From Octopus bimaculoides (Eukaryota): a stretch of DNA of 41,224 bases. Positions 6,588 to 41,224 of the stretch are shown in pieces; position 1 is the stretch's first letter; each line of letters starts with the position of its first letter. Made by a program: the position numbers and the translations under genes. The notes beneath the pieces were generated by a model. That model saw only the letters and a list, made by a program, of their open reading frames with translations. It was not told the origin of the DNA and made no database searches. The stretch spans positions 127,654-168,877 of the forward strand of contig NC_069010.1 in NCBI RefSeq assembly GCF_001194135.2, written 5' to 3'.

Positions 6588-6594
6588 TTTGGAA

Positions 6595-10128: not shown

Positions 10129-10200
10129 TGGATCGACATTCAGGGAAGAAAGAAGTCCAGACAACAGAACATCCTTCAGAAAGTAAACTACCGTCAGATG
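10129..10200 (+). CDS. 72-nt symmetric phase-1 linker exon, copy A
   Basis: Acceptor tatttatttcag| and donor G|gtgagt. Open in phase 1: (V)DRHSGKKEVQTTEHPSESKLPSD(G). The phase matches the RING donor, and splice sites and frame are kept in copy B. Confidence 0.75.
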
Positions 10201-17710: not shown

Positions 17711-18036
17711 TGATATATATGTGTTTATTTATACATGTACACATATTGTCACTTGTTTCTTTGTATATTAATAGTGGGGATGAATAACTGCTATCTCTAG
17801 CAGGCATCACATACTGAGGACAGGTAAGCACCCAGAAACCAGCCTGTTCTTCTGGCCTTGCCATGCTGGAGGGGAGTGGTTTGCTCCCTCACTCACAATA
17901 TATCAAGCATTTTAATACTCGAACTGTTTTTTAACATTTTTTATTATTCTCAAAGACTTTTGATAATCTTTTTCTAAAAAAGTGAAATCGGTTAAGTAAA
18001 TAAATATCTTTAAAATAAGTGCATTTTCAAACCTTC

Positions 18037-18075: not shown

Positions 18076-20722
18076 GAAAAAATTAATAACTTACATTGGA
18101 TTTGGCCATTATTGGTCCAGGCCATGACTAGTTCAAGAACACCACCTAGAAAAGTCTTTTAATTAATTATCTCGGGACACCATGGCCACATGTTGTTGCT
18201 TGAGACGTATCCAGGTGTAGATGGTTTATCTGGTATTTCGTGGGGGGATTTGTCCAGGTACCGTTTTAAAGATCTGGGGTCTTTTTCTACTTTAATTTCT
18301 TTCGGGATACCATTGAAAAGTACAGGACCTTTTGCAGTGAAGAAATTGTGTCGCCATGTTCTTTAGTAATGTGATCTCGACCTTTGTAGGGGACGCATTG
18401 CACAGGAGTGAATTGTAAACATAATCCCGATATCATTTGGATAATATTGGTGAATATTTTCCACATGGTGCAAATAATGTGTCATTCAGAGAATAGAGCT
18501 TCAGCAGTTTAAGTCAAGCCCAGTAATCAAGTCCTATCTTGCTATTTATTTTTTTGTGATTGACTTTTGTGGCACTTCGATCCACATTATGTCTTGTTTT
18601 TTTTTTGCATGGGGACCATAATATGCAGCAGTATTCGAGGTGGGGCCCGGTGAATGTGGAGAAGGGACGGATGATGGTTTCATGATCCCTAGATTGGTAA
18701 GTTTTGAGAATCCACGAGCACATTCTGCGGGCAACAACTACATTTTGTGTTGATGTGTACACTCCAGCTAAGGTTCAAGTAAGTCTCCTGACAGTATGGT
18801 TGTTTGAGTGTACTCCCTCTTTCAAAGTGGTTGAGCTCAGATTTTTCTTCGTTCAACTGCATTATGTTTTTTGTGCCCACTGGGTTACTGTGCATAGGTC
18901 CGTTTGTAGCATCGTTCGATCATATGGTCCATTAATGACTTTCTAGAGCTTAAAGTCATCTGCATCTGTAAATACTTTTATGGTGCTATGTTCAATCGAA
19001 TCTACAATGTCATTGATATAGACAATAAAAAGAAGTGGACCCTGCTCAGTACCCTGTGAGACTCCGCTGATGACTTTTGCTGGTCTTGAATGGATGCCAG
19101 CAACTACAACATGCTGGATTCTGTTTCTTATGAAATACCTAATCCAATGAAGTAGCTTTGCATCAACTCGAGCGTTGGATAGTTTCCTTAACTATATAGT
19201 GTGGTCGACTCTATCAAAGGCCTTACTGAAATCAAGGTATGTAACATCCGCGTTGGAGCCCTCATTGCATTTAAGATGTCATCAAAGTGGTGGAGGAGCT
19301 GTGTTAGACAGTCCCTCCCACCATGAAAGCTATGCTGGTTGCAATTTAGGAGATGATTTTGTTCTAGGAAGGCTGTTATTCTTGATCTCAACACGCTCTC
19401 AAATACTTTGATGATATGTGAGGTTAGTGAGATTGGAGGGATTTATTCCCTTCTTTAAAGATAGGAACGACTGACTGGGAGAGAAGGTTTTGAGGGATAA
19501 AACCAGCATCAAGTGATTTCCTCCAGAGATTTGAAAGAGGAGCTGCAAGTTGCTGTCTTCATTCCTTCAGAACTCTTGTAAGGAACCTGTCTGGACCCAC
19601 TGCTGAATCAGGTTTGATTTCTTTTATAGCTGCTAGGATATCAGTGGCGTCGAAGGTTATGTCGGAAAGGACATGTTGAGGACTCAAAGAAACAAAGCTG
19701 CTTGAGTCAACTGAATCAGTGTCACTGAAGACAGAGCAGTATTGACTTTGCAGGATCTCAGCCATATTTTTAGCATCATTGTGAAGGATGCAGTTTCCAT
19801 CAACCAGTGGGCCGATATAGGGAACTGTGGCCCTGTGTTTTTGCAAAGAAGTAAAAGACTTTAGCATTACTTTGTTGTTTTTAAAAGCCCAGGCTTGGTC
19901 GTTTATAAGAGTTCTCATACAGTCCTGCAGCTGTTGCATCCTTCATTCCAAGGATCTTAATATTCTTGATTTGGGGTGCTGTTGATAGTTGTATTTTAGG
20001 GCATTGATTTTTGGCTTTATTCTTTTTATTCTCCTGGTGAGCGATTTTCTCTGTTTTGGAATCCTGCATTTACTGTTGTTTATGAGTCGTGAGGATGTGT
20101 GGCTTGAGCATATGGGGGTGACTGTGTCCTCAAACCGTTGCCATGCGTTTGTGTTTGTTGTGGTATTCGAGGAAGCAAGGGTGAAGGACCAGTCCACTTA
20201 CGATAAGTCTTAGGTGATCGCACTCCAGGTTGACTTGTGTAAATTCATGTTATCAGACGGGTGCACTGCACTTAGTGATTTATGCCAAATTTTTGGATGT
20301 TGACTATTGAGTATACAGCGTACCGTGTCATGATCAGACAGGAGGGTTTTTTTCCAAAGTGATGTTATGAATAGTGTAAGCATGGTTGCCTGGAACTAGT
20401 TCCAAGGCAATTTGGTTGTTTCTGGTTGCTTCCTGGACGAGCTGTGATAGGAAAAATTATCCATAAATTTAAAAAGTAACTCCACTGGTGCTTTGTCTGA
20501 GCTTGAGGTTCCAGGTCTAACAATATTAGCGGACCTGTCTACAGAGGGTAGTTTGAAGTCGCCCATCATCAGAATATTTGGTGGGTTACATTACAGGAGG
20601 CAAGATCTGATCATCGTGAGGTACTCCTGGAAATAGTGTAAGGGTGCGTATAGGAGTCTGTAGAGCTCAGTCACAGATAGGTTTTTACACTTGTTGTGTA
20701 CAGAGACTGGACGTGTATGTAT
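18075..20722 (-). mobile_element. Decayed CR1-type LINE (EN + RT), 5' part running into the N gap
   Basis: EN: LMMGDFKLP, LSDHDTV. RT: PISLTSHIIKVFESV, FLEQNHLLNCNQHSFHGGRDCLTQLL, YLDFSKAFDRVDH, SGVSQGTEQGPLLFIVYIND, FTDADD. C-terminal PHLEYCCILWSP is typical of CR1. The 3' end abuts (TA)n at 18041-18071. Confidence 0.9.
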
Positions 20723-22423: not shown

Positions 22424-24053
22424 TATATATATGAAACATATGAAGCCCCGAACTTATCTACTCCATTCCTTAACCCTTCTATTCTTATTCGCTCACCCAG
22501 GAACCCTGGTCATTTACCGTGAAATATAAAAATATTTTTTTCTACTTATCATACTTTGATACAGAAAAAATAACAAACCTCTGCCTCAGTAAACCACTAT
22601 TGTTCTTGAGAGATTTTTTTTCTTTTCACGTTTACTACAGATTGCTTGAAACGAACTTTCTACACCTCAGTCCTTGGATCTTACATTTATATATGTGCAT
22701 GTTAGTGTGTGTGTGTGTGTGTGTGTGAATGGTATTGCTTCAACATCTAACCATCTATAGGTCTGATGTGTGACTACAGATGTGTGACTTCATCTCAGAC
22801 AGTTTGATGATCATTTCAGTGTTGATATAATATTTTCTGTGGTGAGAACAAGTTACTCTGGCAGTCAAATGTTCGTCTCCTTCACTTCTGGAATTGTCTA
22901 TCAGACTAACAGCTTGAACAATTTCTCACCTACAATGCGTTGATGTGCTGCTTCAGCTGTGACATTGATTCTTACTTTCTTGACATCACCTTCATCATCC
23001 CAAAATGTTTCTTTATTAATTATGGAAACATTATTCATATGTTTGGCTATGTCTGTGTGGTGTTGCTTTTCTTATGTCTGAAGAAATGTCTGTGTTTCAG
23101 CCGGTCTCTCTTACTTCTGATATAACATACATGGTCTGTTGTCATGTTGTTGTGTTATATTTATATGTACAATACTCTCCCATAAATATTTCTCTTGCTA
23201 TGGCCAGTTGGTTTTATCGAGCCCCATGTAGAGATAGGTTCTTGTTGTTTTGTGGTTTGGGGTTTTATTTTTGTGATATTTGTTTCTTTATATTTCCTAT
23301 TTTTGACTTGATTCTATGATTTTTTAATATTTTGTTTATTGAATAATTTGTGATATTGTGTTTGACAAGTGAATATTTACGCATTAAGTATCAATAAACT
23401 TGATGCTAATCAATAAGGTCAGTTCTGTTGAATATTCTGATCATATATTTAAGATATTATCTTAATGCAGAAAATAAAGTAGAAACAAATGAAAAATGGA
23501 AATAGACTAAACTTAAGAACTTAAGACCATGAAGAAACTCAATACTGTGTTATCAGTTTAATCACTGGATATTCAAACTATGCGTAAATGTAGTTGAATT
23601 TGTGTGTAATTTGGGGCATCTGTAATGTATATTTGTGTAATATATTGTATTCATCATTTTATATTTTATCATTTTCAGTTCTGCAAAATGCTTAAATTGA
23701 AAAAAGGTGAGAGGCTATCTGGCATAACCGTTGCCATTTATCTATGTCATTCGAAAGGAAACTTTCAACATTAAAACAAATGTAATAAGACCCCAGTAGA
23801 TCTCATTGAAAATTCAGAGTTTAAAAAGAAAATATAAGAGCTTTTCCCATCGTTGTTTGGCAAAGACAATGTAAATCAGTGAATTTTCTATTTTTTATAT
23901 AACCATGTTTATATGTATCGTGTTGTGTTAATACTACCAATAAATTATACTGTCACTAGTGTCTTCACCAAAATCTACACAACAATAGTAAGAACAACAA
24001 ACAGAAAATACATTTGTTAGCGGGTCAAACAAAGAACACTTTTGTTCAGAGGA

Positions 24054-24151
24054 AATTAGCTCAATACTAGAATTGAAGAATATTTCTGGAACATAATGTG
24101 TACACAAAATATATTCCAGAAATATACCTCAATTCTAGTATTGAGCTAATT
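24054..24151. repeat. Foldback hairpin: 38-bp arms (2 mismatches), 22-nt spacer
   Basis: AATTAGCTCAATACTAGAATTGAAGAATATTTCTGGAA (24054-24091) pairs with TTCCAGAAATATACCTCAATTCTAGTATTGAGCTAATT (24114-24151). The left arm is also at 4624-4661, followed by an N gap. Confidence 0.9.
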
Positions 24152-24417
24152 ACAAACCAATTTTTGTGACATATCAAAGTCAAAAAATATATTTAACAGT
24201 ATGTATATGAATGCAACACACACATGTGTGAGCATAGCATTCATACACACACACACACACACATCTGCATTTATGTTATTGGTTAAAGAATTTTTTTATG
24301 TACTCTTGCTGGTTCCTGTAGTGTCTCGTGATATTTTGTGCTCTAAACATGTACTCAATCCAATATTTGTTATAAACGAATGTTATCGGTGGGATGTGTT
24401 TCTGTTTTGTTCCACAG

Positions 24418-24560
24418 ATGTCTGCTGTGTGAAAAGAGTGAACCTATAATGGAGTTCCAACCATGTGGACACACTGTTATATGCAGAAATTGCTATTAAA
24501 ATCATAAGCCTAATTCTTGTCCCAAGTGTCAACAAGATATAGCAAAATATAGTATACCTG
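24418..24560 (+). pseudogene. Duplicated RING-HC exon, copy B, with an in-frame stop (TAA 24497-24499)
   Basis: Same acceptor; donor G|gtatga. CLLCEKSEPIMEFQPCGHTVICRNCY*NHKPNSCPKCQQDIAKYSIP; all eight zinc ligands retained; one codon shorter than copy A. Confidence 0.85.
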
Positions 24561-26001
24561 GTATGAATACAATTTAATGATCTGTCTGTTTGTCACATTG
24601 GCTTTACAACGGTGAATAATGTACTTTATATTGTTGTTTAGACCCAGGTTTGTCATAAGTTGGCACATTTATGATAAAAGGTGTTCTAGATGTCTTCTCT
24701 TTGTGATACTATACCAATCACACCATCCACTAAATTTTGTCTTTATCCAAGTACAAGGTGTGCTATACTTCAAGAGGTTGCTGTCTGCAAAAAGAAGACT
24801 TGTGTGGGATACTGGAAGTTAAACAGTGACTAAGAGAAATATCAATAATATTCCTGACTTTTATCAGTAAATATTAACTTTTTAATGTTAATTGCGAATG
24901 ATTAGAGGTGATCAATGATGTATCAGTAACTTGTGAATCTGATAGCTAAAGACAAAGGTAGTTACAAGAACATTAATTTTTGGTAAAATAGGAGAGTCAA
25001 TGAGGAAATCTCAAATGAGAGATTAAGGAACAACATTAGAGACTTCGATTGTTAATTAGGTGTTTTGTGTTGCTATGAATATTTATTTAGTGAAAGGTGT
25101 CATTGATTATTTCAACATATTTTGAAAAGTTGTCCTCCAGAAATTCTCCATAATTTGTCATGTTATGAAGAGCTCCAATAATTACAGTAGTCTGATGTTT
25201 GATATGAAATGTTGTCCCTTGTGGTATGTACCCAGAATATCCCAGATTAGAATATGTATTCTTGTAATAAATAAAAAGAAAATTACAAAATTCACTCAAA
25301 CAATATTAATCATTCAATTATTTTTTATTGAATGTTAAATTAGTATTGAACTGTTGAATGTGTGTTTATGTTTAAACGATGTATTTATATTCACGTTTAA
25401 AATAGACTTCTAGAAACAAAATATGAGTTCCAAATGTAAACTGAACACACAACGCTTTGTTTGTAACTATATTTAATTAACGCTTACTACAAAGTTTCAT
25501 TAACATTTATCATCCATATTTCTAATCACTCTTATTGGATTTTAGATTATATTAATGTCAATGCAGGCACAATTTTCTGTGTATTTTACCTTTTTGTTTC
25601 AGCTCTGAATTGATTCTTATTTTTAAATTAGATCACGGAACCTGGTCATTGTTTTTGACTGATAAACGAAATTATTGTTTGTATTTGGTACTGGACCTAG
25701 TACCATTTTTCTGCAATTCCTCATGGAACTAGCATTATTTCAACTGTTCTCAGATACAATCTATATCGATAACTAGCACTCCATCGGTTAGGATAATGAG
25801 TGAACCAGTTTTCCAATCAATAAAACAACCTGCTAATGAAATTAATGTGAAAGTGGCTGAGTACTCCAAAGATGTGAGTACACTAAATGTAGTTCTCAGG
25901 AAGATTCTGCATAGCACAGGAGGTGAAAAGGCTGGCCCTTTGAAATATAAGTAGAACTTATTTTCATCAACTGAGTGGATAGAAGCAATATGAAATAAAG
26001 T

Positions 26002-28073
26002 CAGATAATATACAATCTATATAGATATCATTATAATGGGGGTCACATATACAGTTATCAGATTATATACAAACAATATATTTTTAATTACAATGATGGT
26101 AACATATCACTTTGTCAGGTTATATATATTCTATATAGATATCATTATAATGATGGTCACCTATCCCTTTGTCATGTTATATACAATCTATATAGATATC
26201 TTTATAACGATGATCACATATCCACTTGTCAGGTTATATACAATCTATATAGATATCATTATAATAATGGTCACATATCTCTTTACCAGATTATATATAA
26301 TCTATATAGATATCATTATAATAATGGTCACACATCCCTTTGCCAGATTATATACAATCTATATAGATATCATTATACTGATGGTCACATATCTCTTAGC
26401 CAGATTATATCCAATCTATATAGATATCATTATGTTGATGGTCAGATATCCCTTTGCAAGATTATATATAATCTATATAGATATCATTATATTGATGGTC
26501 ACATATCCCTTCCCCAGATTTTATATAATCTATATAGATATCATTATATTGATGGTCACATATCCCTTTGCCAGATTATATATAATCTATATAGATATCA
26601 TTACAATGATAGTCATATATCCCTTTGCCAGATTATATATAATCTGTATAGATATCATTATAATGATGGTCACCTATCCCTTTGCCAGATTATATACAAT
26701 CTATATAGATATCTTTATAATGATGGTCAGATATCCCTTTGTCATGTTATATACAATCTGTATAGATATCTTTATAACGATGATCACATATCCACTTGTC
26801 AGGGTATATAGAATCTATATAGATATCATTATAATGATGGTGACATATCTCTTTGCCAGATTATATATAATCTATATAGATATCATTATACTGATGGTCA
26901 CATATCCCTTTGTCAGATTATATACAATGTATATAGATATCATTATAATGATGGTCATATATCCCTTTGCCAGATTATATATAATCTATATAGATATCAT
27001 TATAATGATGGTCACATATCTCTTTGCCAGATTATATAAAATCTATATAGATATCATTATACTGATGGTCACATATCCCTTTGTCAGATTATATACAATG
27101 TATATAGATATCATTATAATCATGGTCATATATCCCTTTGCCAGATTATATATAATCTATATAGATATCATTATAATGATGGTCACATATCTCTTTGCCA
27201 GATTATATATAATCTATATAGATATCATTATAATAATGGTCACATATCCCTTTGCCAGATTATATACAATCTATATAGATATCATTATACTGATGGTCAT
27301 ATATCCCTTTGCCAGATTATATAAAATCTATATAGATATCATTATACTGATGGTCATATATCCCTTTGCCAGATTATATATAATCTATATAGATATCATT
27401 ATACTGATGGTCATATATCCTTTTGCAAGATTATATACAATCTATATAGATATCATTATATTGATGGTCACACAACCCTTTGCAAGATTATATACAATTT
27501 ATATAAATATCATTATACTGATGGTCACATATCCCTTTGTAAGATTATATATAATCTGTATAGATATCATTATATTGATGGTCAAATATCCCTTTGCCAG
27601 ATTATATAAAATCTATATAGATATCATTATAATGATGGTCAGATATCCCTTTGTCAGATTATATACAATGTATATAGATATCATTATAATGATGGTCATA
27701 TATCCCTTTGCCAGATCATATATAATCTATATAGATATCATTATAATGATGGTCACATATCTCTTTGCCAGATTATATATAATCTATATAGATATCATTA
27801 TAATAATGGTCACATATCCCTTTGCCAGATTATATACAATCTATATAGATATCATTATATTGATGGTCAAATATCCCTTTGCCAGATTATATAAAATCTA
27901 TATAGATATCATTATACTGATGGTCACATATCCCTTTGCAAGATTATATACAATCTATATAGATATCATTATATTGATGGTTACATATCCCTTTGCCAGA
28001 TTATATATAATCTATATAATCTATATAGATATCATTATATTGATGGTCACATATCCCTTTGCCAGATTATATA
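26002..28073. repeat. 57-bp minisatellite, long allele (~36 units before the Helitron)
   Basis: 57-bp period, which is the 19-aa period YPFARLYIIYIDIIIMMVT of ORF 26036-28231; variant units recur at 171-bp and 570-bp offsets. Confidence 0.97.
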
Positions 28074-29056
28074 TCTATATATATAAAAATGAGAATGTGT
28101 GTCTGTCTGTCTGTCTGTCTGTCTATGTGTGTGAATCCCTAAAACTCGAGAACTACGCAACCAATTTCATTCAAATTTTACACATGCCTTACTTAGGGTT
28201 CCAGTTGTGTTTTAGTAAAAAAAAATATTAACTTCTTGCAGAGTTCGAGCACACGGCAACATAATATCTCCTCCACTATTAAAGTATTACGTGTCAAAAG
28301 TGAAACAAAAACACTCATGTCAAATACTTTCACTTTAAAAATGAAACTATTCCACTAACTGAAACAATCACATTTCNNNNNNNNNNNGAATGGATCTTTA
28401 TGAAATTTGGAAATTATATTCTTTGCATAACGGCCATAACTCCCATGAAAATTCATATATTTTTGATGTTGATGAAATATTAACCCGAACATAACAGATG
28501 AGCATTTTTTAGAAAATGATGTCACACGTTATCGAGGCTACCATTCTTTCTGGATGTGCAAAAGGGGATGACGTCTTTATTCCAAGAATTCCTCTTACTC
28601 TATCAGGAGCAGACATTCCTTTTACATTTAGAAGACTACAATTCCCCCTTCGTGTGACTTTTGCCATGTCCATAAACAAACCTCAGGGTCAAATACTGTC
28701 TGTAGCTGGTCTTCTCTTGGAAGAGCCCTGCTTCTCACATGGCCAACTGTATGTTGGCTGCTCAAGAGTGGGCATCAAAAAAAAACCTATTTGTATATGC
28801 TCCACAAGGGTAAACAAGGAACATTGTTTACAACGAGGTGTTATAATCACAACAGCAAGAAAGTATGTACATGATCACCTTCTTTTACGAAACTTCATTG
28901 ACTTTCATATATTTATATTGATATACATATACATACGTGTGTTTGGGTGCGTGTGTGTATATACATCTCTATATATAAAGATGATGCGTAGTCTGGACGG
29001 CGTTTTTAGATTTCATTATTCTCTTTAACCCGGGCAACGCCGGGTATTTCTGCTAG
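28074..29056 (+). mobile_element. Young non-autonomous Helitron (983 bp) inserted in the minisatellite
   Basis: 5' TC (28074-28075) and 3' hairpin ACCCGG-GCAACG-CCGGGT (29028-29045) followed by CTAG (29053-29056). Inserted between A28073 and T29057 with no target-site duplication; removing it restores the unit CCAGATTATATA^TAATCTATATAG. Confidence 0.95.
28516..28790 (+). pseudogene. Helitron RepHel Pif1-helicase C-terminal fragment
   Basis: HVIEATILSGCAKGDDVFIPRIPL...FTFRRLQFPLRVTFAMSINKPQGQ...FSHGQLYVGCSRV corresponds to Pif1 motifs V/VI. Confidence 0.92.
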
Positions 29057-29189
29057 TAATCTATATAGATATCATTACAATGATAGTCATATATCCCTTT
29101 GCCAGATTATATATAATCTGTTTAGATATCATTATATTGATGGTCACATATCCCTTTGCCAGATTATATATAATCTTTATAGATATCAT
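29057..29189. repeat. 57-bp minisatellite, ~2.3 units continuing after the Helitron
   Basis: Same unit, in register with the array before the insertion. Confidence 0.95.
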
Positions 29190-30062
29190 TTTGGAAACAT
29201 CATCAAAGCGTCTCCCCATGCTCTAGCAAACATGGATTCGGCTAAACTAGAGAGAGCTCCCATTCACAATCACAACTCAGAATGCAGTGTCGGATTAATC
29301 AATTACAAGTTGAGTCGTTGAGGTGGCAAGCAATTCAAATGACCATCTTCGTCTCAAGTTAAACCCAAGTCGGCTGATCTGATTCGAGTGTCCGGGGCAT
29401 TCAGGTAATGTAACAAACTTATCAAACCTGGGGGTGAGTGGATACATGACAAACAACTAAATTGGATAATTTGATATATCATGATGTACAACTTACTAGC
29501 ATCGTTGAGGCAGATGCCTATTTCATGGCAGATATACCAGATAAAGAAAAGAACAGCAGGCTGTATTTAGAAATGCCAATGACACTGCCGTTTCTGTGCC
29601 AAAAACAAGCAAGATTTCCATCTCAAACAACGTTTATCAAAATCTCGCAATGAAGCCATAAGTAATAAATTTCAAAATTTAATTGAATAATGTGAGTTGC
29701 AAGACAGACTTAAGACTTATTGATTTGAATCATACGTTGGATGACTTGGTCTGAGGTTCTGAATCCATAAAGGTTGTCAAAGTATTATTTATCATATAAC
29801 TTTGGGACTTCGGAAATGTTTTTCCTTCTGTAAAATTAAATTACTTAATTATTTGTCATTAAACTGTTTATTCCACATTCAATTCGAGTTCTTTGACTGC
29901 AAAAGCATATATAAAGACATATCATATGACATTCTTGGCAACAACTACTGATTTTGGGAAAAAGATGTGTATTTTGTTCTCCCTCTTGAATTTGTGCCAT
30001 ATTGTAAAACTAATACTATTTTTGGATTCAGCTTATTAAAAAAAAACCGTGCTAAGCTAAAG

Positions 30063-31376
30063 TCTATATGCATAAATGTGTAATGGAGTCTGTCTGTGTG
30101 TGAGTTTGGGGTTAATCTAACTTCTGTCACATCGTCCAACCAATTTTAATGATTTTTGGCACATAGATTACATACCCTGAATTTCAAATAATGCCAGAAT
30201 TTTTCGAAAACTCGATAATACTCATTTGGCATAGATTTTTGTGAGCTCAATCGGATGTTTGAATGGAAATACCCATAACGATGTTATTTTTTCCTGCAGC
30301 TTTTGCTTTTTGTTTGTCCAATTTTGATGAAAATTGATGAGTGATCGAAGCTCATGGCAGTGAGTTGATTTCAGTATATAGTGTTGATAAAAAATCGATA
30401 ATTGTGCCTGATCAGTGGTTATATAAAATCAATAGGCTTTTTGTATGCAAATACCCATAGGGATTTTATTTTTGGCTGTAACTTTTATATTTTTCATCCA
30501 ATTTTAATGAAATTTGAGATGTAGGTAAATTTTGTGGTAGGGGAGATGGTAAAGATGTTTATTTAATTCAAAAGGGCTTTAATAGGGCACAAATGCAAAT
30601 AAGTATTTCCTTAGAGACATTCTTATTGATTTTGTAGAAATTTTACACATGATTACAGTTCATGTCCATTAGTTGATGCTAGCATGAAGAGTTGACAAAA
30701 ACCAATAATTGCACATGAGTGGGGATTTTAAGAAATCAATAGGTTTTTTGTATGCAATTCCTCATAGGATTAATATCTTATGCTGTAACTTTTACAGAAT
30801 TCATCCGATTTTGATGAAATTTAACATTTAGGAAAAGTTTATCGTTGGAGTCATGTAGAATTAAAAGTAAACTGGTGAAAGGCAGAAATCGTCAACATTC
30901 ATTCACAATAAAATAATGAACTGATTTTGAAGAAAATTGACCCATGAGTAGAGTTAAGCACTTCGACATATGAAACATCGATTATTCATATAATGTATTG
31001 GGATTTAAAATGGGATATTTTCATGTAAATGGTCACGTGGATTCTATTGTATGACATAAATTTAACATTTTCCTTCGGATTTTGCTGAGATTGGACACAC
31101 TGATCAATTTTGTACAGAGGGTGGCATTAAGAGGAGAGAAATAAACGTTGCTCTCAACAGTTGGAGGTACACCCAAAAATTTGACTGTGATTTCAGATGG
31201 TCCATTATGATGAAATATGTTGAAAGCGTTAACTGGGTAAAATCCCTGCTAAACCAGATATACCATCTTAATGGGTAATAGTTGGTACGGGGAAAGTAGA
31301 AGATTTCAATACTAGGTCAGAGGTAGGCTTAACTTCAACACGGAAAACATGAGCAAATGCCAGGTCCAACAGCTAG
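30063..31376 (+). mobile_element. Old non-autonomous Helitron-like element, copy B
   Basis: 5' TCTATATGCATAAATG. The 3' end ACATGAGCAAATGCCAGGTCCAACAGCTAG|T looks like a degraded version of the young Helitron end ACCCGGGCAACGCCGGGTATTTCTGCTAG|T. It is shared with copy A, so it predates the duplication. Confidence 0.55.
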
Positions 31377-32507
31377 TAGTATATATTTACGTACACTATA
31401 AGGTTTTGGATTGATTAAATTAGTATTTACTTCTATATTTTCTAGGTTTCTAACTTCAAGCAGTATATACAGCTGGGTTGCCAAAATCGAAATCGAAAAA
31501 AAAAAAAAAACGTTTATATCATTGTTTTGTGACCCTAGGCACAACTTTTCAGAAGCAATAAAGGATTAAAATAACATCCTCCATACCTGTGCATGCGTAC
31601 CCAGTTTATCTTTAGTGCATTTTAGCCTCATGGTTTCAACATCGACAGACAGCATCCTCATGACTTCATAAGCAGTCTTGAGGAACTACTCTTTCATCCA
31701 TTTAATCTCGTTTCTTCTTTCAATCCATTTGATATTTCTTTGTATGTTACAACACATTTTCTGTAGATCTTCAAACAGGGCTAGCAAACCTTCCTTCTCC
31801 TTGGGTCTGGTCAGCTTTCCACTGCTTTTCTAAGTCCTTCTCCCTTCTTAACTGATGCATCTTTTTTTCTCTCCTACTTTCGCCAGACTTAGCAGATAAC
31901 TGCTTCTTGTTACCCTCCATTACATCAAATAACTCAACACTTATGTCGTAGATGGTGATTGCAAGCTTATTCAGCTTAACTCTTGTTTCCCCCATCCTTT
32001 TTATGGAGCATTTTGCATACTTTCCCTTTGAGGGACCTGTCACTAGCCTTATAATTTGCAGCTGACCACTAATTATTTCGTTTCTTTATCATCTCATCTA
32101 GCAAAGAGGCATCTTGACCTAAAGATCATGAAGGCGTTTCAGCTGAAGTATTTATCTGTCTACTGCACTTTGACTCTTAGGGTGACTTTCTTCATATTTG
32201 ATGGTCAAATGACCTACACTGCTTCAATTTCTCCAAATAATTCTTGCCTTGATGGATCTCCAATCCTACTTAGGATTGTCTGCACTCTGAACTACATCCA
32301 GTCTCTTCTGTATAACTTTAAACCAGTCTTATTTCTGAGCTCATGACTGTATCCTCTTCAATAACCACCTTAGAAAGTATAGAAATAATGACCAAAACCA
32401 TAGTGGTCACTAGTTAACCATCGATGATAAGATGTCTCATGTTAATAGAAGATAGATTATTAGCAGAAATAATGATATCATACTGCAACGAGAAATATTT
32501 ATTTCAG

Positions 32508-32579
32508 TGAATCCACATTCAGAGAACAAAGGAGTCCAGGCATCAGCACATCCTTCAGAAAGTAAACTACTGCCAGATG
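32508..32579 (+). CDS. 72-nt symmetric phase-1 linker exon, copy B
   Basis: Acceptor tatttatttcag| and donor G|gtgagt; open frame (V)NPHSENKGVQASAHPSESKLLPD(G). Confidence 0.72.
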
Positions 32580-32907
32580 GTGAGTATAAAATAACAAGAA
32601 TTAAGTGATTTCTGTAAAATTTAGCTACACATGTTTTTTTTCTTTCTTTGTTTCTCAGATTGACTAAAAATAGGTTCCTTTCCTAATTTCCAATTGAGTG
32701 GTTGGCAGTAAATATTGAAGTATTTACTGAAATTTCATAAAATAACCTCTCAGTTTAGCAATAGTAATATGGATAAATTAGTTGAGACAATATTGGTAAT
32801 ATTATGTTTTCGAAAAGGGAAGTGAGATACAATGTTGATTAGGAGTAAACAAGTGAGATAATAACAATGTTGTTATTGTATGTTGTTGTAAGGGGTAAGC
32901 AAATGAG

Positions 32908-33254
32908 TTACTCTTTTACTCTTTTACTTGTTTCAGTCATTTGACTGCGGCCATGCTGGAGCACCACTTTTAGTCGAGCAAATCGACCCCAGTACTTATT
33001 CTTTGTAAGCCTAGTACTTATTCTATCGGTCTCTTGTGCCGAACAGCTAAGTTATGGGGACATAAACACACCAGCATCGGTTGTCAAGTGGTGTTGGGGG
33101 AACAAACACAAACACACAAATATATATACGACGGGCTCCTTTCAGTTTCCATCTACCAAATCTACTCACAAGCTTTGGTCGGCCTGAGGCTATAGTAGTA
33201 GACACTTGTCCAAGGTGCCACGCAGTGGGACTGAACCTGGAACCATGTGGTTGG
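32908..33254 (-). mobile_element. SINE (octopus-type interspersed repeat)
   Basis: TTACTCTTTTACTTGTTTCAGTCATTTGACTGCGGCCATGCTGGAGCACC...GCCGAACAGCTAAGTTATGGGGAC...CCAAGGTGCCACGCAGTGGGACTGAACC, recalled as an abundant octopus SINE; a homologous fragment is at 11399-11488. Confidence 0.8.
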
Positions 33255-34481
33255 ACAATGTTTTTGTTTGTTTTACAATTTCTGATGGGTTATTTTTGTT
33301 GTTGTTCAACCAGATGTCATAATCTGACAGACATATGATGAAAAGTGTTCCAAAAGTAAATTCCATGTGTTTTTCTCACTGATAGTAAATCTCATATTGC
33401 ATCCGTTGTCTTTGTCCAAGCACAAGAGTTTCGTTTGATGCTTGGATAACCATAGTGTCTTTCTCTCTCTCGCTTCAAGATAGGTACTGGCTACAAGATT
33501 CAATACAATCAATGAAACTTCTGGGCAAATACAAGATCTGGTGATTGCAGCTTGGTCTATATCCTGATCTTCTTTATGTTTATTTGAGACTCAGTTCTTG
33601 TGTACCATTTAAAGTATTTTCAGTGCATTAAGGTGGGAATGAAGAAAGATGTGTAGTTGATGAAGTTTCGTGCAATTATACTGAAGTATTTTGGGATACC
33701 TGTCATTATCTTCTGCTCCACCTAGGTAGAGTTATTAAGGAGGATGTATGACATCCAAATATTTTTTGATTCAGAGGACATAGTGTTGACTTGTGATGGG
33801 GTACAATTAGAATAAACGATTACAGGCAGCAACCTTCATTAAAGAGTTCAGGTGTATGTTTATCCTAGTTGAAGTGGTGTGTCCTGAGATATTGTGGCTA
33901 GATCTTTGGAGGATTGACTGGATTGACATTCGAATTAAGCTGCAAATTAGAAGAATGTTGGTTACTGAATTCTAGAGGTGAGAGGCGAAAGCCATGTTGT
34001 TGATTTGGTAAAACTAGAAAAGTATTTTCACCAAGTAGTGATAAAGAAGATGATTGCTATATTGTTAGGATTATGTAGAGAGAAGAGGTTTAGGAAGGTT
34101 AGTCTATTTTGTGGTGGTACTACTGTAGAAAATATTAAAATGGTGTCAAAAAGTACATTGGTCACCAGTTGACCATGGATCAGAGGAATATCTTACGATA
34201 CTAAAATACTAGCTAGACTCGTAAAAAATTTACAGAAAATATAAAAAATGTAAGCATCTGTAAATTGTGTGCTGGTGCCATGAGAAATGTTTCTATAATG
34301 TGACAGTCACAGAATACAGAAAGAAGCGTAAATCTGGTGACCGGTAAATCACAAGAAAAAAAGTCACAGTAATAAAGTCAAAATTTTTGCTAGTTAAAAG
34401 AGTCACAATTTATGGGACGCAGACAAAACCTCCGCAGGACAAAACCCATTCAGACAACCCTTTCATTTGCCTTTGCATTGT

Positions 34482-34717
34482 AAATATCATTTGGGAAGGC
34501 ATGAACATCACAGTTTTCCATTTCTCCTTTGAAATCCTTTCATTCCAATTTACATTTCAAATATCATTTGAAAGGCATGACATCATGATATTTTATTCCT
34601 TACTTGAAATCCTTTCATTCCTCTTTACCCTACAAATATCATTTGGAAAGGCATGAACATCACAACAGTCCATTCATCATTCAAAATGCTTTCATTCCTC
34701 TCTACATAACAAATATC
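34482..34717. repeat. ~76-bp tandem repeat, 3 units (further ~1.4 units at 35631-35740)
   Basis: AAATATCATTTG(G)AAAGGCATGAACATCAC...GAAATCCTTTCATTCC; the AAATATC anchor recurs at 34482, 34559, 34634 and 34711. Confidence 0.88.
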
Positions 34718-34777
34718 AACTGATTCTGAGGACATAGTGATAGCCTGTGAATTGGGGCAGTTAAAATTAAAGATTAC

Positions 34778-34937
34778 CATCTAGTTAAACTGCACTAAGG
34801 TGAGATGTTTCTACCAGGAACCTAGAGCAGTGCTTGGGACTAGATTTGAACTGTTGACTTCTGGCACAGGGGTCAACATAATATCCTCTTGGTCAGCTGC
34901 TAGAAATGATTTATCTAAATTGAGAGAAGACATCATC
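34778..34937. repeat. ~160-bp direct repeat (partner 35830-35993) bracketing Death-domain exon 1
   Basis: GTGAGATGTTTCTACCAG.AACCTAGAGCAGTGCTTGGGACTAGATTTGAACTGTTGAC...GGGGTCAACATAATATCCTCT is present in both. Confidence 0.9.
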
Positions 34938-35221
34938 CTAATTTCCAATTGAAAGATTAGCTGTATAATAATTCTATTAAACATATTGATCTTACTGAAA
35001 TTTTAGAAAATATCTAACGTGGTTAGAATGCTTTGTAAAATGGATAATTCAGAAGACAATAGAGTTAATATCAGTATATTAGAAAGTATAGAAATATTGA
35101 CCAAGACCATAATGGTCACCAGTTGACCATTGTTGATAGGAATGTCTGATAAACTGTAGATTATTTTTAGAAATAAAGAAATCTTACCATACATTATAAA
35201 CTTTGGAAATATTTATTTCAG

Positions 35222-35293
35222 AGAGTTTAAAGCTGAAGGAGAAGAATCTTGTGAGAGTGGTTGAGAGGTTAGGAAGTAATTGGTGGCAAGTGG
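35222..35293 (+). CDS. Death domain exon 1 (72 nt, phase 1-1)
   Basis: Acceptor atttatttcag| and donor G|gtgagt. (E)SLKLKEKNLVRVVERLGSNWWQV(G) has the L..LG..W..(L/V)G pattern of Death-domain helices 1-2 and joins in frame to 40565. Confidence 0.85.
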
Positions 35294-36954
35294 GTGAGTA
35301 TAAAAAAAAACAATACCTAATAGATTTCTATAAATATTACTTTCACCTGAGCTGTTTTATTTGTTAAAATCACTGAGAACAGGTTCCATTCCTAATATCT
35401 AGTTGATAGGTTAGCTGTATAATAATTCTGTTAAACATATTGATATCACTGAAATTTCAGAAAATATCCACAGAGCTTAACATGGCTGGTAATAATGGCT
35501 AAACTAGAAAACACAAATAATGTTAGTGTTATCTTTTGGAAGAGAGAACTAAAATATGTTGTTTAAAGGTAGACAGGTGAGTTAATGACAAAGTTTTGGT
35601 TTGCTTTATGTCTTCACTAAGTCTTCTGCTAGGCATGAACATCACAATATTCCATTTCTCCTTTGAAATCCTTTCATTCCCCTTTACATTAGAAATATCA
35701 TTTGGAAAGGCATGAACATCACAACATTCCATTTCTCCTTGTCTGAAAGTGTAACAACATCAGATATCACTTATACAAAGTTCCTATTATTTACAACACT
35801 GTTTTGTACCTCCCCACGGTACCTATTTACATCTAGGTAAACTGTACTAAAGTGAGATGTTTCTACCAGAAACCTAGAGCAGTGCTTGGGACTAGATTTG
35901 AACTGTTGACCTCTGACACAGGGGTCAACATAATATCCTCTCAGTCAGCTGATAGAAAATGATTTATTATCTAAATTAAGAGAAAACATCATCTATGACA
36001 TGGTCAACTTGTTATACCTTTAGGGAATCACACAAAATGTACCAGTCATACACTGGGGTAAAATCGATTCCCTGAAACTAGTGCATTATCATCATCCTCA
36101 TCTTATGCCCATTTTTCTATGTTTGAATGTGTTAGTCAACTTCTCCAACAGCTGGTTTGGTTCTTTGTCCTGTTTGACCTCTATTTTCCTTCCTCTTGGG
36201 ATTTTCTCTCAATTTTTGGTCCAAACTTCATCTTCCACATCCTTTCCATATCTTTATCACTGTCGTCAATTTCCTGCAGGATAAGTTTAGTTATCAATTT
36301 GCAGATTTTTTTTTATTCTTCAATAAAATATTTTTTAACTATTAATAGTGAGATATTATGGATATATCTTCCCAGTCAACTTTCCTCATGATGAACTTTC
36401 TTTACAGTAAATTGATGGTTGTGAACTCTCTTGTGATGAATAGATAGCAGTGTACTGACCATAATAATCCCCCATACATCGTTCACCTCATTGTTTCTAT
36501 AATTACTTTACTTTCAGAATAGCTTCCTCTACTTATGATTATATCAGCTAGGTAAAGAAAACTATTGTCAGCTAACTATTCTTGTATATCTGCTACTTTC
36601 AGACTCCTTCCTCTCCATCAACTTGCCTCTAATACTACATCACCTATGGTGTGCACTGAGTACACCAAATAGAACCCTTATTAACCCCGTCTATCTGCTT
36701 GCTTATCAAATACGATAACTTCCCAGATGATGTTGGTGGATGCAGTGATTCCTTCAGGACTTAAGTGTCTGCATGTGTATGGTGTCGATGGTTGTGGTTC
36801 CTGTTTTCTTTTCTGCTAGCTGAAACTCTTCTCTTTGCTAGTTTTACTTTAAAAGCTCTCCATTATCGACTTCTCTCTAAATTGCGGCATTCATCCAGTA
36901 AAAGAAATCCTTATGATGAGTCATGAATCTAGAAGTATGTTCTGTGTACCTGAC

Positions 36955-37115: not shown

Positions 37116-37629
37116 GAGGAGGAGAGGCCTCACACTATTTCAGGCATTGCCATGTGATGATACCAAGCAACCGAAATGGAGATCTTCTAAAGGGTCCCTG
37201 AAGTAATGTTACTCAAAAGGATGCACACTGCTCAGAGATCTGGGAGTTTCTCCAGGCTGGGCCACTAAATCTCCACAGCTCTGGTTCTACAGATATCAAA
37301 TAAGAATGTTGCAGGAAAGAACTGCAAAATAGATTCATCAAGTTGAGCCAAGTGGCAGCAGACTTAGGGTTAGACTGCGAACTAGGTGGTTGGATAATAT
37401 CTACAGCCTTAATTGGTCATGGTTGTGAATCTAGCCACCAAGTCTAATGATAGTTGCTTTTGATAGGGCTTTATGTTGGAAGTACCTGAGTACCCACCCA
37501 GGAATAGAAAGCAAAGAAAACAGAACAGGGGCTCAAATAGTAACACTTTTGTCTACACACACACACACACACACACTTTTCCTGCTATCTATTTACCATA
37601 AATTTTCTCAATAATTGTCAGTTACTTTC

Positions 37630-40160
37630 CTTTGTAACTGGTGATTTCAATGAACATGTCGGGCAGCAAGCAGGTGTCTTCCATAGGGTCCATAGGGGCC
37701 ATGGAATTGGTTCCCAAAGTGAGAAAGGAACAAGGTTGTTGGTGTTCTGTGATACAAATGACCAACTGATTTGAAACACCAACTTCAGAAAGCCAGCTAG
37801 TCACCTGAAAACCTATAAATCTGGTGACTATGCTAGCAAGATTGACTACATTCTCATTAGAAAGGTGTAATCATGGTTGCTCATAAATGCAAAGTCCTTC
37901 CCTGGAGGGGATTGTACCCCTCAGCATGGGTTATTTACTAGTGTCTTCAAGTTGGTGGCACAAAGGATTCCAAGAAGCAAGCTAGTTTGGAAAAGAAGGA
38001 TATGGAAGCTTAAGGATTCTTTGAATAGTCAGAGATTTAGAGATGTCATAACTAAAGCATTTGATGAGAAGGAGGAGGGGCTACATCATTGCAAAATAGA
38101 AGATAACTACAGGTTTCTATGAGAGAGTTTACTGCAAGTCACAGACCAAATTTGTAGTTTATGCCAAGTCCAAACCAGGTCTAAAGTGACATGGTGGTGG
38201 AACAGTTAGTTTACAGGGCTATTAGAAACAGGCTTGGAAGGACTGGAAGGATGGTGGCAGCAAAGAGTTATATCAGGCAGCAAGAAGGGAAGCTAAGAAG
38301 CAGGGATACTTAGCCAGAAGGGAAGCAGAAAGGAAGACGTTTGCCAATGTCTTACAAGACAGTATGCCAGGGGAAAATGGTGTGTTGTTGGAGAGAAGTG
38401 TATTTGCATTGACATTGATTCTCTTGCAGTTAGTGACTCTGCAAAGATAGAAGCTTGGAAGTGCCACTATGAAAGGCTACTAAATGTAGAGAATGCATGG
38501 GAGGAGGAGTGTGTGCCTAATGTGGATCCAACAGAAGGACCAGCAATCCGAATAGGTAGTAACATGGTAGCTAAAGCCATGAAGGATATGAAGATCAGCA
38601 AAGACCTTGGCCCATCAGGGATAACCACTGAGATGCTTAAAAATTCTGGCAGTGTGGGTTATGCTCTAGTCACCCATAGTGTAAATCAGGTGGTTCATGA
38701 AGGAGCCATACCCAATGACTGGTGTAGCAGCACCATGGACAACTGCTAGAAAAGCAAAAGTGATGCCTTAGATAGAAATAATTACAGAGGTATCTAATTG
38801 CTGGATCAGGTGATAATAGTTATAGAGAGGATCGTAGCCCAACTAATTAGGGGGAGAGTTAGTCTAGATGTGATGCAGTTTGGTTTTGTGTCAGGGTGAA
38901 CTGCAAGAGAAATACATAACCAAAGAAAAACCTCAATACTTGTCTTTTGCTGAGATGGAGAAAGCCTTCAACAGGGTTCCCCACTCCCTTATCTGGTGAT
39001 CAATGTGGAAGGCATGGATAGAGGAATGGTTGGTGATAGTTGTACAAGCCATGTACAGGAATGCTGTTAATAAGGTGAGGGTTGGCAACGAGTATAGTGA
39101 TGAATTGAGGGAACAAGTAGAAGTTCACTAAGGATTGGTCCTCAGCCCCCATTTGTTCATAATAGTCCTCCAGGTAATATCAGAGGAATTTAAGATAGGC
39201 TGCCCCTAGGAGCTCCTCTATGTTGATGACCTTGTTCTTATAATCATATCATTTCCATAACTAAAGAAATTTCAGGTGTGGAAGCAAGGTATAGAATCAA
39301 GGAGCCTTAGAGTTAATCTAGCAAAAATGAAAGTCTTAGTAAGAAGGAACACAGACAAATCACAAGGCCCTTTATGTAGATGACCCTGCTAGATCTGTAG
39401 AAAAAGCATATGTAGAAACTCCATAGGATGTACCCAATGTTAGCTATGGACACATAAGAGGTGCAGCAATATCAGAGGAGGGTTAACAGGGAAAATAGAT
39501 TTTGTGTGTAGAATGCGCACAGATTCAATAAACTCTAAAAATGTACAGAAAATAGATTCCATCAAATGGCAGGGCAAATGCTTATAAGTAGTGTATAGCT
39601 TCCGTTATCTGGGTGACCAAGTCAGCAGTGGAGGTGGGTGCTCTGAAAATATAGCTGCTCGAATAAGAATAGACTGGGTAGTGTTCAGAGAGCTCCTACC
39701 TCTGTTGGTAACAAAAGGCCTCTCCATCCATGTTAAAAGAAGACTGTATGATGCTTATGTGCAAACGGCCATACTACACAGCAGTGAAACACAGGCTGTG
39801 ACTCCCGAAGACATGTGTAGGCTTGAAAGAAATGAATCTAGTATGCTTTGGTGGATGCACAATGTCAGTATGCATGTACAACAGAGTGGTGTAAGTTGGG
39901 AGTAAGAGGCATCAGATCTGATGTGCAAGAGAGACGAATGCACTGCTATGGTTATGTGCTGCATATGGATGATGGGAGCCGATGTAAAGAAGTGCCTGTT
40001 TCTAAATGTGGAGGAAACCTGTGGATGGAGTTGACCCAAGAAGACATGGCATGATGTGGTGAAGCATGATCTTCAAACATTGGGCCTCACAGTGGCAATA
40101 ATAAGTGATGGATACCTTTGGCAATATGCCATGTTTGAGAAGACCTCTCAAGCCAAGTAA
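37630..40160 (+). mobile_element. 5'-truncated decayed RTE-type LINE (EN end + RT) in the last intron, sense orientation
   Basis: VTGDFNEHVG, NTNFRKPASHLKTYKSG...IDYIL, NYRGI*LLDQV, MQFGFV, EMEKAFNRV, GLVLSPHLFIIVL, LLYVDDLV (39219-39230), FRYLGDQVSSGGGC, WVVFRELLPLL, RLERNESSMLWWM; many stops. Confidence 0.92.
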
Positions 40161-40564: not shown

Positions 40565-40773
40565 GTGTGTTCTTAGGAGTGAAATTTATTGAGATAGAAA
40601 TTATCAAGCATGACTTTCCCTTCGACACAATAGAACAGAGCTTCCAGATGCTCCTCAAATGGTATACACATTGTAATCCAGAGGAATGTACATTCAAAAT
40701 ACTCAGAGAAGCCCTTGAAACTGTTGAGTGCTTTGATGCCCTCGGATGCCTATTAGAGGGAATTTCTACGTAA
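40565..40773 (+). CDS. Death domain exon 2 (probable last coding exon)
   Basis: Long pyrimidine tract ending tctttggcag|. Phase 1 gives (G)VFLGVKFIEIEIIKHDFPFDTIEQSFQMLLKWYTHCNPEECTFKILREALETVECFDALGCLLEGIST*. The I..I..D.P....EQ..QML..W...T...L..AL pattern fits Death-domain helices 3-6. A possible donor c|gtaaat at the stop cannot be excluded. Confidence 0.88.
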
Positions 40774-41020: not shown

Positions 41021-41167
41021 TTTGTTGTTGTTGTTGTTGTTGTTGTTGCTGCTGTTGTATGTCTAAGCACCTCCCTAAACACTTCTATTGTTATAAAACA
41101 GTTTTAATATCATCCGGTATATTCATAGTTATCTCCCTTCATTTATAGCCTAGAGTAGAATGTCTGC

Positions 41168-41224
<57 letters not shown>
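41021..41224. repeat. (TTG)n at ~41021-41055 and (TA)n(GT)n at ~41168-41224 microsatellites
   Basis: Direct. Confidence 0.95.

Follow-up and report, generated by a model that had tools for sequence, protein, structure and literature searches.

Linker exons probably derived from a Death-domain exon in an Octopus ankyrin–RING–Death gene family

The DNA analysed here, referred to as the window, is a stretch of 41,224 nucleotides (nt) from Octopus bimaculoides (NCBI RefSeq assembly GCF_001194135.2, contig NC_069010.1, positions 127,654 to 168,877 of the forward strand), and carries the 3′ half of a gene belonging to an ANK–RING–(cassette)n–Death family (ANK, ankyrin repeats) specific to Octopus and annotated as 'MIB2-like'. 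The spacer between the RING and Death domains of this family is very probably a tandem array of one exon cassette, in which the linker exons are splice-frame-keeping copies of the first Death-domain exon (Death exon 1) that have decayed to a disordered spacer.

On this reading, the cassette begins with some 150 nt of intron, continues with a short, symmetric exon of phase 1-1, and closes with 300 nt or more of intron downstream, and the whole interval from the RING exon to the last exon is a tandem array of this single unit. The 3′-most copy, Death exon 1 (72 nt), with which the Death domain starts, would be held by selection on the fold, and the upstream copies would be spliced in frame because acceptor, donor, and phase were inherited together. 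Being freed from the need to fold, the upstream copies would therefore drift or be remodelled in their coding sequence toward a disordered spacer rich in proline, serine, glutamate, and lysine. The number of units would shift by tandem duplication (of 166 bp, about 1–3 kb, or 22.7 kb), by decay, and probably by alternative splicing, which jointly would set the distance from RING to Death domain. We infer that the change ran from Death exon to linker, because the Death fold is ancient.

Cassettes and their shared flanks

A spliced query composed of linker exon B and both Death exons retrieved a single annotated protein with 100% identity, designated P0001 (141 amino acids (aa); 'p53-induced death domain-containing protein 1-like [Octopus bimaculoides]'), which also maps to the window at 100%. 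An exhaustive HMMER search with P0001 yielded 126 representative relatives, the closest of which combine ankyrin repeats with a C3HC4 RING, short repeated units that vary in number, and, at the C-terminus, a Death domain. By profile search, dozens of named proteins of O. bimaculoides, O. sinensis, and O. vulgaris were matched with E values down to 1e-199, and no relative outside Octopus was found among the named top matches. The family is dispersed in databases under the names 'MIB2-like', 'PIDD1-like', 'ankyrin-3-like', and '26S proteasome subunit 10', the first two being similarity labels and not statements of orthology; no published description of an octopus ANK–RING–Death family was found in the literature.

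Five paralog loci were mapped (five proteins), namely L002–L005 of O. bimaculoides and L006 of O. sinensis, and they follow a common exon plan: a 176-nt exon, a RING exon (phase 2 to phase 1), phase 1-1 cassettes, and a terminal Death exon 2. In the interval from RING to Death exon 2, all 14 annotated exons of the five loci are 51, 72, or 87 nt long with phase 1-1, and all 14 are bounded by variants of ...aaatatttatttcag and gtgagtataaaa...; Death exon 1 has 72 nt in every one of the five. Several cassettes stand together in the annotated models P0001, P0022, P0129, and P0175. Six exons of the window (986–1161, 4978–5123, 10129–10200, 32508–32579, 35222–35293, and 40565–40773) match the plan of L002–L006 and, when joined, give one uninterrupted frame of 248 codons closing at a stop codon. 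Ankyrin exons would be expected upstream of window position 1, and this upstream part of the window gene is covered by none of the annotated proteins. The parts of the window gene are as follows.

986–1161 (+): 176-nt exon, copy 1; FCKMLNLQKEERLSG...LFPS; open, phase 0 start, phase 2 end; located by tblastn with P0017, P0022, and P0129, splice sites checked
4978–5123 (+): RING (C3HC4) exon, copy 1; intact; phase 2 in, phase 1 out; Pfam zf-C3HC4_3; also matched by paralogs in tblastn
9984–10265 (+): linker cassette A; upstream flank 9984–10128, exon 10129–10200, downstream flank 10201–10265; assembly gap from 10266
32370–32891 (+): linker cassette B; upstream flank 32370–32507, exon 32508–32579, downstream flank 32580–32891
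34104–35071 (+): decayed third cassette; upstream flank 34104–34209, partial downstream flank 34936–35071 (nhmmer E 4e-14 and 4e-20)
35079–35619 (+): Death cassette; upstream flank 35079–35221, Death exon 1 35222–35293 (helix 1 region), downstream flank 35294–35619
40565–40773 (+): Death exon 2, terminal; TAA at 40771–40773

Linker A (10129–10200), linker B (32508–32579), and Death exon 1 (35222–35293) are each exactly 72 nt, directly preceded by the identical 16 nt GAAATATTTATTTCAG and directly followed by the identical 12 nt GTGAGTATAAAA, and their phase 1-1 frames are open (DRHSGKKEVQTTEHPSESKLPSD, NPHSENKGVQASAHPSESKLLPD, and SLKLKEKNLVRVVERLGSNWWQV, respectively). A motif in the upstream intron starts at 9985, 32371, and 35080, with 53 of 61 positions identical between the latter two; the full upstream flank of 138–143 nt has 83% identity at aligned positions, and about 300 nt of the downstream intron can be aligned with 74% identity at aligned positions. 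The initial annotation had described these three exons with their shared boundaries, the upstream motif, and the alignable downstream introns, and all of these were recovered. With BLASTN, 32370–32871 aligns to 35079–35595 at 66.6% across 536 columns (E 4e-27), and the separate flanks of linker B and Death exon 1 are detected by nhmmer with E values of 1e-12 to 1e-19; their homology runs from 32370/35079 to about 32890/35620, beginning abruptly, and no alignment is found further upstream. In all, about 0.5 kb of alignable intron is common to the three 72-nt segments. Death exon 1 of the window is 82–86% identical to those of L002 and L003, the flanks being 71–85% identical.

Shared flanks of this kind could also belong to a dispersed repeat or transposable element (TE) family lying around unrelated exons, as might be suggested by the short inverted repeats of the upstream motif (TGACCA...TGGTCA) and by the richness of the region in transposable elements. 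In a sample of 147.6 kb from six Octopus loci (the window and the five paralog loci, family loci throughout), the cassette profile gave 27 matches, all of them in gene orientation and confined to the stretch from the RING exon to Death exon 2, and none in ANK introns, intergenic flanks, or TE-rich stretches; over both strands of the same sample, the exact boundary strings fell at cassette exons in 23 of 24 occurrences. A short interspersed nuclear element (SINE) at 32900–33260, serving as control, shows the opposite distribution, with 12 further copies in both orientations scattered across the window and L002–L006. Within this sample of family loci, the position and strand of the matches make a dispersed repeat an extremely improbable source of the flanks, in keeping with the view taken in the initial annotation that they were duplicated together with the exon.

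A docking or selector RNA element in the upstream motif was considered and rejected, as its four copies fold differently (z −2.7 to +0.6), and Rfam matches were absent from 32000–36200. Several cassettes (window 35560–35581 and 32846–32866, L002 about 37190, and L003 about 7640) share a conserved sequence close to the 5′ splice-site consensus (ACAG/GTGAGTTAAT), located about 275 nt beyond the cassette exon and weaker in the case of linker B (ACAAGTGAGATAAT). This site might act as a cryptic donor, take part in recursive splicing, or mark where a non-coding exon ends or begins. Outside the core cassette, the intron segments 33260–34100 and 35631–35993 are found again, in the same orientation, close to cassettes of L002, L004, and L005, and the duplicated unit therefore appears to be 1–3 kb in size, larger than the 0.5-kb core.

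The decayed third cassette has no exon or splice sites recognisable by alignment and shuffle test. Its interior (34456–34937) is a copy of the conserved intron segment 35631–35993, includes a 77-nt minisatellite, and has the order of two intron segments rearranged relative to the Death cassette; segment 35631–35993 is also present downstream of Death exon 1 in L004 and L005. A Death-like remnant at 34225–34380, convincing by eye in a permissive global alignment, failed the shuffle test and was discarded.

Exon bodies, paralog intermediates, and rates of change

Similarity between linker and Death cassettes falls within the exon (10 identical positions per 24-nt segment inside the exon vs 14–23 per 24 in the flanks). 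The linker and Death exon bodies of the window agree at 29 of 72 positions without gaps, close to the value of about 30/72 first reported, and exceed shuffled sequences (18–19 ± 3.5, P 0.002–0.006) in this fixed register only, since gapped and local alignments were without significance in shuffle tests (P 0.05–0.77). Third codon positions are no more alike than the others (11/24 for linker vs Death exon 1), and cytosine occurs 3 times in Death exon 1 vs 15–18 times in the linkers. Because the gapped and local tests within the window are not significant, the claim of homology rests on the fixed register together with the intermediates found in paralogs.

In register, the window linkers match five Death exon 1 sequences at 29–35 of 72 positions (P ≤ 0.007 each, best P<0.001), and 51-nt linkers of the type 'xPKxEEKxVQT' are 59–69% identical to the Death-exon-1 consensus. 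In L002, the linker segment VQTVAE (GTCCAGACGGTGGCAGAG) matches LLRVAK (CTCCTGAGAGTGGCTAAG) of its own Death exon 1 codon by codon. Exons still resembling the Death helix, which were sought in the paralogs, form a graded series, listed here in order of decreasing resemblance with identity to the Death-exon-1 consensus.

L005 17881–17952: intact second Death exon 1, SQKLDGKLLHGAAKKLGSQWQQV, 52/72
L004 10027–10098: half-decayed 72-nt copy, SLKMEENHFHSTAKILSVKQQQV, 41/72
L006 17858–17929: half-decayed 72-nt copy, SLNLEENRFHSTSKKVAVKQQQV, no consensus score
L005 12418–12468: pseudo-exon with acceptor AG changed to AA, SPKFKEKEVEKMAEAF, 35/51
L002 second linker: NPNFEEKQRETMAKRV, 31/51
L002 first linker: CPKLSDKGVQTVAESV, 30/51
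Window linker B: NPHSENKGVQASAHPSESKLLPD, 36/72, in register
Window linker A: DRHSGKKEVQTTEHPSESKLPSD, 34/72, in register

The two Death-exon-1 copies of L005 (17881–17952 and 21180–21251) are used differently in annotated models: in P0020, Death exon 2 follows immediately on the upstream copy, and P0175 takes in both copies, with an 87-nt linker between them. The exon at 17881–17952 may thus serve as a Death helix or as a spacer, depending on splicing.

Alternatively, only the intron frames might be homologous, the linker bodies being unrelated sequence swapped in, for which the segment switch of snake three-finger toxin genes provides a precedent in the literature (PMC2474615). The collapse of identity exactly within the exon, the equal dissimilarity of all codon positions, and the contrasting cytosine counts would fit such a swap, as would the 87-nt exon L005 19605–19691, in which no significant similarity to Death exon 1 was found. 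Against it stand the in-register matches to all five Death exon 1 sequences, the continuous series of intermediates of the same length or with a simple 21-nt deletion, and the single-base codon correspondences between LLRVAK and VQTVAE. Conserved introns beside dissimilar exons are indeed seen; that the exons are unrelated is contradicted for most cassettes, L005 19605–19691 excepted, and we consider replacement of the bodies very unlikely. The proposal that the linkers are remodelled copies of Death exon 1, duplicated with their flanks, is thus supported by the intermediates and the in-register matches, although the statement that the exon had been erased was too strong, about 50% in-register identity to the family consensus being retained.

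The conversion from Death exon to linker did not take place within the window gene. Linker B agrees with an O. sinensis linker (L006 17211–17261) at 31 of 51 positions in register (P<0.0002), the O. sinensis linkers being the closest in register to the window linkers, and the flanks of the window linkers (77% and 71% identical to the Death flank of their own gene) are no closer to it than to the Death flanks of other genes (66–78%). Because the linkers match those of a paralog from another species in register and their flanks are not closer to their own Death cassette, the window linkers belong to a family-wide linker class, and the Death-to-linker change predates the window gene. Intragenic gene conversion between the linker and Death flanks of the window was likewise rejected, there being no within-gene excess of identity.

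With respect to rates, the flanks of all cassettes are star-like, with mean Jukes–Cantor (JC) distances of 0.40 (Death–Death), 0.42 (linker–Death), and 0.44 (linker–linker), whereas the exons give 0.43, 0.82, and 0.80, respectively. Linkers A and B differ by 14% vs 7–8% in the surrounding non-coding DNA and 6–9% in the cassette flanks. In a young pair of L005, the exon differs by 25% and the flanks by 12%, with 15 nonsynonymous and 2 synonymous changes (synonymous divergence 0.16, flanks 0.12, nonsynonymous 0.27); these estimates, and those for four-fold degenerate sites given below, come from small counts and depend on the aligner. By these comparisons, linker exons change about twice as fast as the non-coding DNA beside them, and a further step accompanies the transition from Death exon to linker. 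The initial annotation had the exon evolving far faster than its introns; a faster exon is confirmed, but the difference is only about two-fold (JC 0.8 vs 0.4; 14% vs 7–8% for A and B). An estimate of 4–10 times the neutral rate was withdrawn, since it presumed an origin from the Death exon of the same gene, but the flank matrix and trees are star-like and the ratio is about 2.

The two-fold excess, present at each of the time depths compared (A vs B, the L005 pair, the family-wide JC distances, and the four-fold sites of the functional Death exons), could reflect either acceleration of the exon or restraint of the flanks. It is quite conceivable, though we lean against it, that the exon was not accelerated and that the flanks were held back by purifying selection on splicing elements or by gene conversion among cassettes from which selection bars the exons, the linker exon then changing at no more than the neutral rate. 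The equal, star-like flank distances of all three classes point in this direction, as do the invariance of the splice-proximal strings and the apparent alternative splicing of the cassettes, conserved intron flanks being typical of alternative exons. Four-fold sites of the Death exons also differ more (46–54%) than the flanks mismatch (28–32%), a relation that MAFFT alignments show for Death exons alone, the ANK and 176-nt exons lacking it; a seemingly general excess of intron conservation over synonymous sites around all exons appeared with an end-gap-free pairwise aligner only and was dropped. On the other side, in the youngest comparison, that of A and B, where counts are small, no extra constraint is visible, the flanks (6–9%) differing as much as the rest of the 11-kb duplicated non-coding DNA (8.3%), linker flanks show no sign of conversion in being no closer to their own Death flank than to those of other genes, the upstream motif lacks both a consistent RNA structure and an Rfam match, and in the L005 pair synonymous divergence is about that of the flanks with nonsynonymous divergence well above. 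A further proposal, that the RING-to-Death part of this octopus-specific E3-ligase family undergoes exon-focused diversification, selective or mutational, and not simple relaxation, we regard as rather doubtful; if it were true, the birth and decay of cassettes would be one visible output. The family is possibly immune or apoptotic in function.

The window gene, its product, and its duplication

In the predicted product, RING exon copy 1 matches Pfam zf-C3HC4_3 (PF13920) with 32.2 bits (cut-off 27), and Death exons 1 and 2 together match Pfam Death (PF00531) with 25.9 bits (cut-off 22.6, E 1.1e-5), a score that falls to 13.6 bits, below the cut-off, when linker B is swapped for Death exon 1. 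The AlphaFold model of the 248-codon product, built from a 30-sequence family alignment, has a confident RING, no secondary structure and a predicted local distance difference test (pLDDT) score below 50 over most of residues 109–150 (the two linkers), and a Death domain with helices at 162–247 and pLDDT 91–96 over most of its length. Foldseek matches the RING model to the RING domains of IDOL, cIAP, and XIAP, and the Death model to the death domains of RAIDD, RIPK1, and ankyrin-G, the latter with target TM-scores of 0.75–0.83 and root-mean-square deviations of 1.5–2.1 Å. The linker between the folded RING and the folded Death domain is accordingly predicted to be disordered. The exons are unlike those of a mutually exclusive cluster, which encode interchangeable variants of one segment, in that the linkers are predicted to be disordered and the Death match is lost on swapping.

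Measured between the final CxxC of the RING and the helix-1 motif of the Death domain, the spacers of 57 family proteins range from 11 to 128 aa, with values concentrated at 19 aa and at lengths that exceed this by multiples of 17 (36, 53, 70, and 87 aa), bearing out the earlier suggestion that duplicated and remodelled exons generate linker-length variation. Whole cassettes make the difference among isoforms X5 to X17 of O. sinensis LOC115225502. The length of the RING-to-Death spacer is likely to be functionally important.

In L006, three 51-nt linker exons lie at 16879–17261 in a tandem array with a period of 166 bp and introns of 115 nt, followed by exon-less partial units up to 17521; the cassette is present here in miniature. 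The spacers of P0002 and P0027 consist of short internal repeats (EPSTSQH and QSTSQ units), and this suggests a second route of linker growth, namely microsatellite-like expansion inside a cassette exon.

The window itself adds a third scale, at which a 22.7-kb intragenic duplication supplied the second linker cassette while its companion exons were disabled. The duplication and the features connected with it are the following.

1–11296 (+): segmental duplication, copy 1; intact 176-nt exon, intact RING exon, and linker cassette A
22729–34112 (+): segmental duplication, copy 2; tandem, 22.7-kb, by self-BLASTN
23679–23854 (+): 176-nt exon, copy 2; disabled, two in-frame stops
24418–24561 (+): RING exon, copy 2; disabled, in-frame TAA plus indel
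32900–33260 (+): dispersed repeat of SINE type; an insertion behind cassette B that does not belong to the cassette

The two copies are recognised as collinear self-BLASTN blocks of 79–97% identity, window bases 1–36 matching 22729–22768, and their non-coding mismatch is about 8% (8.3% over the whole duplication). Linkers A and B, with exons 86% and flanks 91–92% identical, accordingly represent one cassette copied by the 22.7-kb duplication and not two independent events. The derivation of both linkers from the Death exon stands, but they are not independent copies, and the conversion did not occur within the window gene. No third copy of the duplication was found in the 9.5 kb beyond the window, half of which are gaps.

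The gene encoding P0001 lies on CM046630.1 (assembly GCA_001194135.2), where locus L001 corresponds to the window with an offset of 20,992 bases; the window is AT-rich, with 26 assembly gaps and GT-AG introns. Linker B is in frame within P0001, and Death exon 1 is its annotated exon 3. Its exons 1 and 2 lie at 30993–31024 (32 nt, MYWDLKWDIF) and 32467–32507, the latter prolonging linker B by 41 nt upstream across the family-standard acceptor. Because the exon rule is seen in 14 of 14 annotated paralog cassettes, the first exon and the prolongation of linker B look like an annotation work-around for missing upstream exons.

Several observations weigh against the cassette origin proposed above or its operation at this locus. 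The ungapped match of the linker and Death exon bodies within the window is only 29/72, and their gapped alignment is without significance. Exon and flank rates are asymmetric, exons changing about twice as much as flanks and the four-fold sites of Death exons exceeding the flank mismatches, and the repeat test drew on 147.6 kb of family loci and was not genome-wide. P0001, the sole annotated model, reaches linker B through an acceptor 42 nt upstream of the family-standard one, and a search of annotated proteins found none with RING copy 1 or linker A. The copy-2 176-nt and RING exons are pseudogenised, so that the locus may be in partial decay. Finally, linkers A and B differ at 10 of 72 positions, all ten changes being nonsynonymous, which fits a dead or unconstrained exon as well as a free linker.

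The last of these points raise the question of whether A and B are inert pseudo-exon relics at the window locus, the cassette origin remaining intact and no linker having contributed to proteins. The absence of an annotated protein joining RING copy 1 with linker A, the fragmentary nature of P0001 (141 aa, an odd first exon, and a different linker B acceptor), the stops in the copy-2 exons, and the wholly nonsynonymous differences between A and B, more frequent in the exon (14%) than in the surrounding non-coding DNA (7–8%), are all compatible with relics, and decayed cassettes do exist (34104–35071, and L005 12418–12468 with its altered acceptor). However, the 16 nt before and 12 nt after both linkers have stayed identical to those of Death exon 1 in a neighbourhood diverged by 8–9%, the frames of A and B are open, the six exons form an uninterrupted 248-codon frame, and the counterparts of these exons carry a coding annotation in all paralogs examined. 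Inert relics are therefore the unlikely case in our estimation, and we infer from the sequence that A and B enter the transcript as 72-nt exons.

Other features of the window concern the duplication and its surroundings. Microsatellites of the (TG)n type at 22705–22728, directly before copy 2, and at 41166–41224, at the window end after Death exon 2, may mark the breakpoints of the 22.7-kb duplication. In duplication copy 1 (6383–6588), a 57-nt minisatellite is repeated 3.5 times, as against 36.4 plus 2.4 times in copy 2 (26002–28085 and 29057–29190), the array having grown (or shrunk) about ten-fold after the segmental duplication. The copy-2 array is split by about 1 kb containing the open frame 28513–29025, which resembles the C-terminus of a PIF1/Helitron-type helicase and has no Pfam match at E<0.001. 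Two segments of 256 nt (11550–11805 and 12312–12567), 100% identical and 762 nt apart around a (TA)n run, adjoin assembly gaps and may be explained by an artefact of the assembly or by a repeat of very recent origin, e.g., a long terminal repeat. Transposable-element debris lies at 12512–15279 (−), 16930–17505 (+), 18500–20600 (−), and 37540–40070 (+), filling duplication copy 1 over its 3′ half as well as the intron that separates the two Death exons; a Pfam RVT_1 fragment (13114–13509, −; reverse transcriptase) and a mariner-type Transposase_1 fragment (16930–17505, +) were both confirmed, and the remaining open frames are putative fragments of long interspersed nuclear elements.

Comparison with known systems

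The origin proposed for the octopus linkers is worth comparing with other cases of exon duplication. Tandem exon duplication within genes was reportedly described as a general mechanism by Kondrashov & Koonin in 2001 and by Letunic, Copley & Bork in 2002. The octopus cassettes resemble such duplicates in being neighbours of equal length and phase, with homologous flanking introns and a local origin, and probably, as those often are, in being alternatively spliced. Classical tandem duplicates, however, keep recognisable protein similarity and often are mutually exclusive variants of one structural element, whereas the octopus copy leaves the domain, loses the fold, and serves additively as a spacer, being reused across a lineage-specific family. 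Patthy's rules describe the shuffling and duplication of symmetric phase 1-1 modules, and here, too, phase 1-1 symmetry permits insertion, deletion, and skipping of a cassette without breaking the frame; unlike those complete, autonomously folding domains, the octopus module is a domain fragment (Death helix 1). The PEVK exons of titin are short, tandemly duplicated, and differentially spliced, giving a low-complexity spacer of tunable length, and the octopus cassettes likewise form an exon-built disordered spacer of variable length; the PEVK units are not known to originate in the exon of an adjacent folded domain. As to domains, the RING exon matches zf-C3HC4_3 and its model the RING structures of IAP and IDOL-type E3 ligases, and the C-terminus matches Pfam Death and solved death domains (RAIDD, RIPK1, and ankyrin), although the ANK–RING–Death order of the family differs from the architecture of both MIB2 and PIDD1.

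Accelerated evolution with conserved introns was reportedly found in venom phospholipase A2 genes by Nakashima et al. The nearest published pattern is that of the snake three-finger toxin genes, in which accelerated segment switch in exons (ASSET) leaves introns conserved and exon segments radically changed (PMC2474615), and snake venom genes have been described as combining accelerated evolution with conserved introns (PMC2711939). Both in ASSET and in the octopus cassettes, introns and exon–intron boundaries can be aligned and exon segments are radically different. In contrast to ASSET, the octopus cassettes show residual in-register homology and stepwise intermediates, for which foreign segments are not needed; moreover, the snake product is a secreted toxin whose fold is retargeted, whereas the octopus product is an intracellular E3-ligase/Death-domain protein, the changed part of which loses its structure.

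In this family, part of a folded domain would have found new use as a disordered spacer, and living paralogs still retain the steps in between. An exon duplicated together with its splice signals and symmetric phase is a frame-safe unit, able to multiply, shrink, decay, or be skipped, and the outcome here would be that the spacing of a ubiquitin-ligase RING from a Death-domain interaction module can be tuned. The family in which this occurs is large, apparently restricted to Octopus among named database matches, and hidden under misleading names, and its boundary rule (...atttatttcag / gtgagtataaaa...) could mend fragmentary gene models such as the 141-aa P0001. Altogether, the mechanism, in which a symmetric exon with its splice context is duplicated in tandem and then loses its structural role, is of a known kind; what is new is a Death-domain exon turned into a disordered linker variable in copy number, and an Octopus-specific family in which this change recurs.

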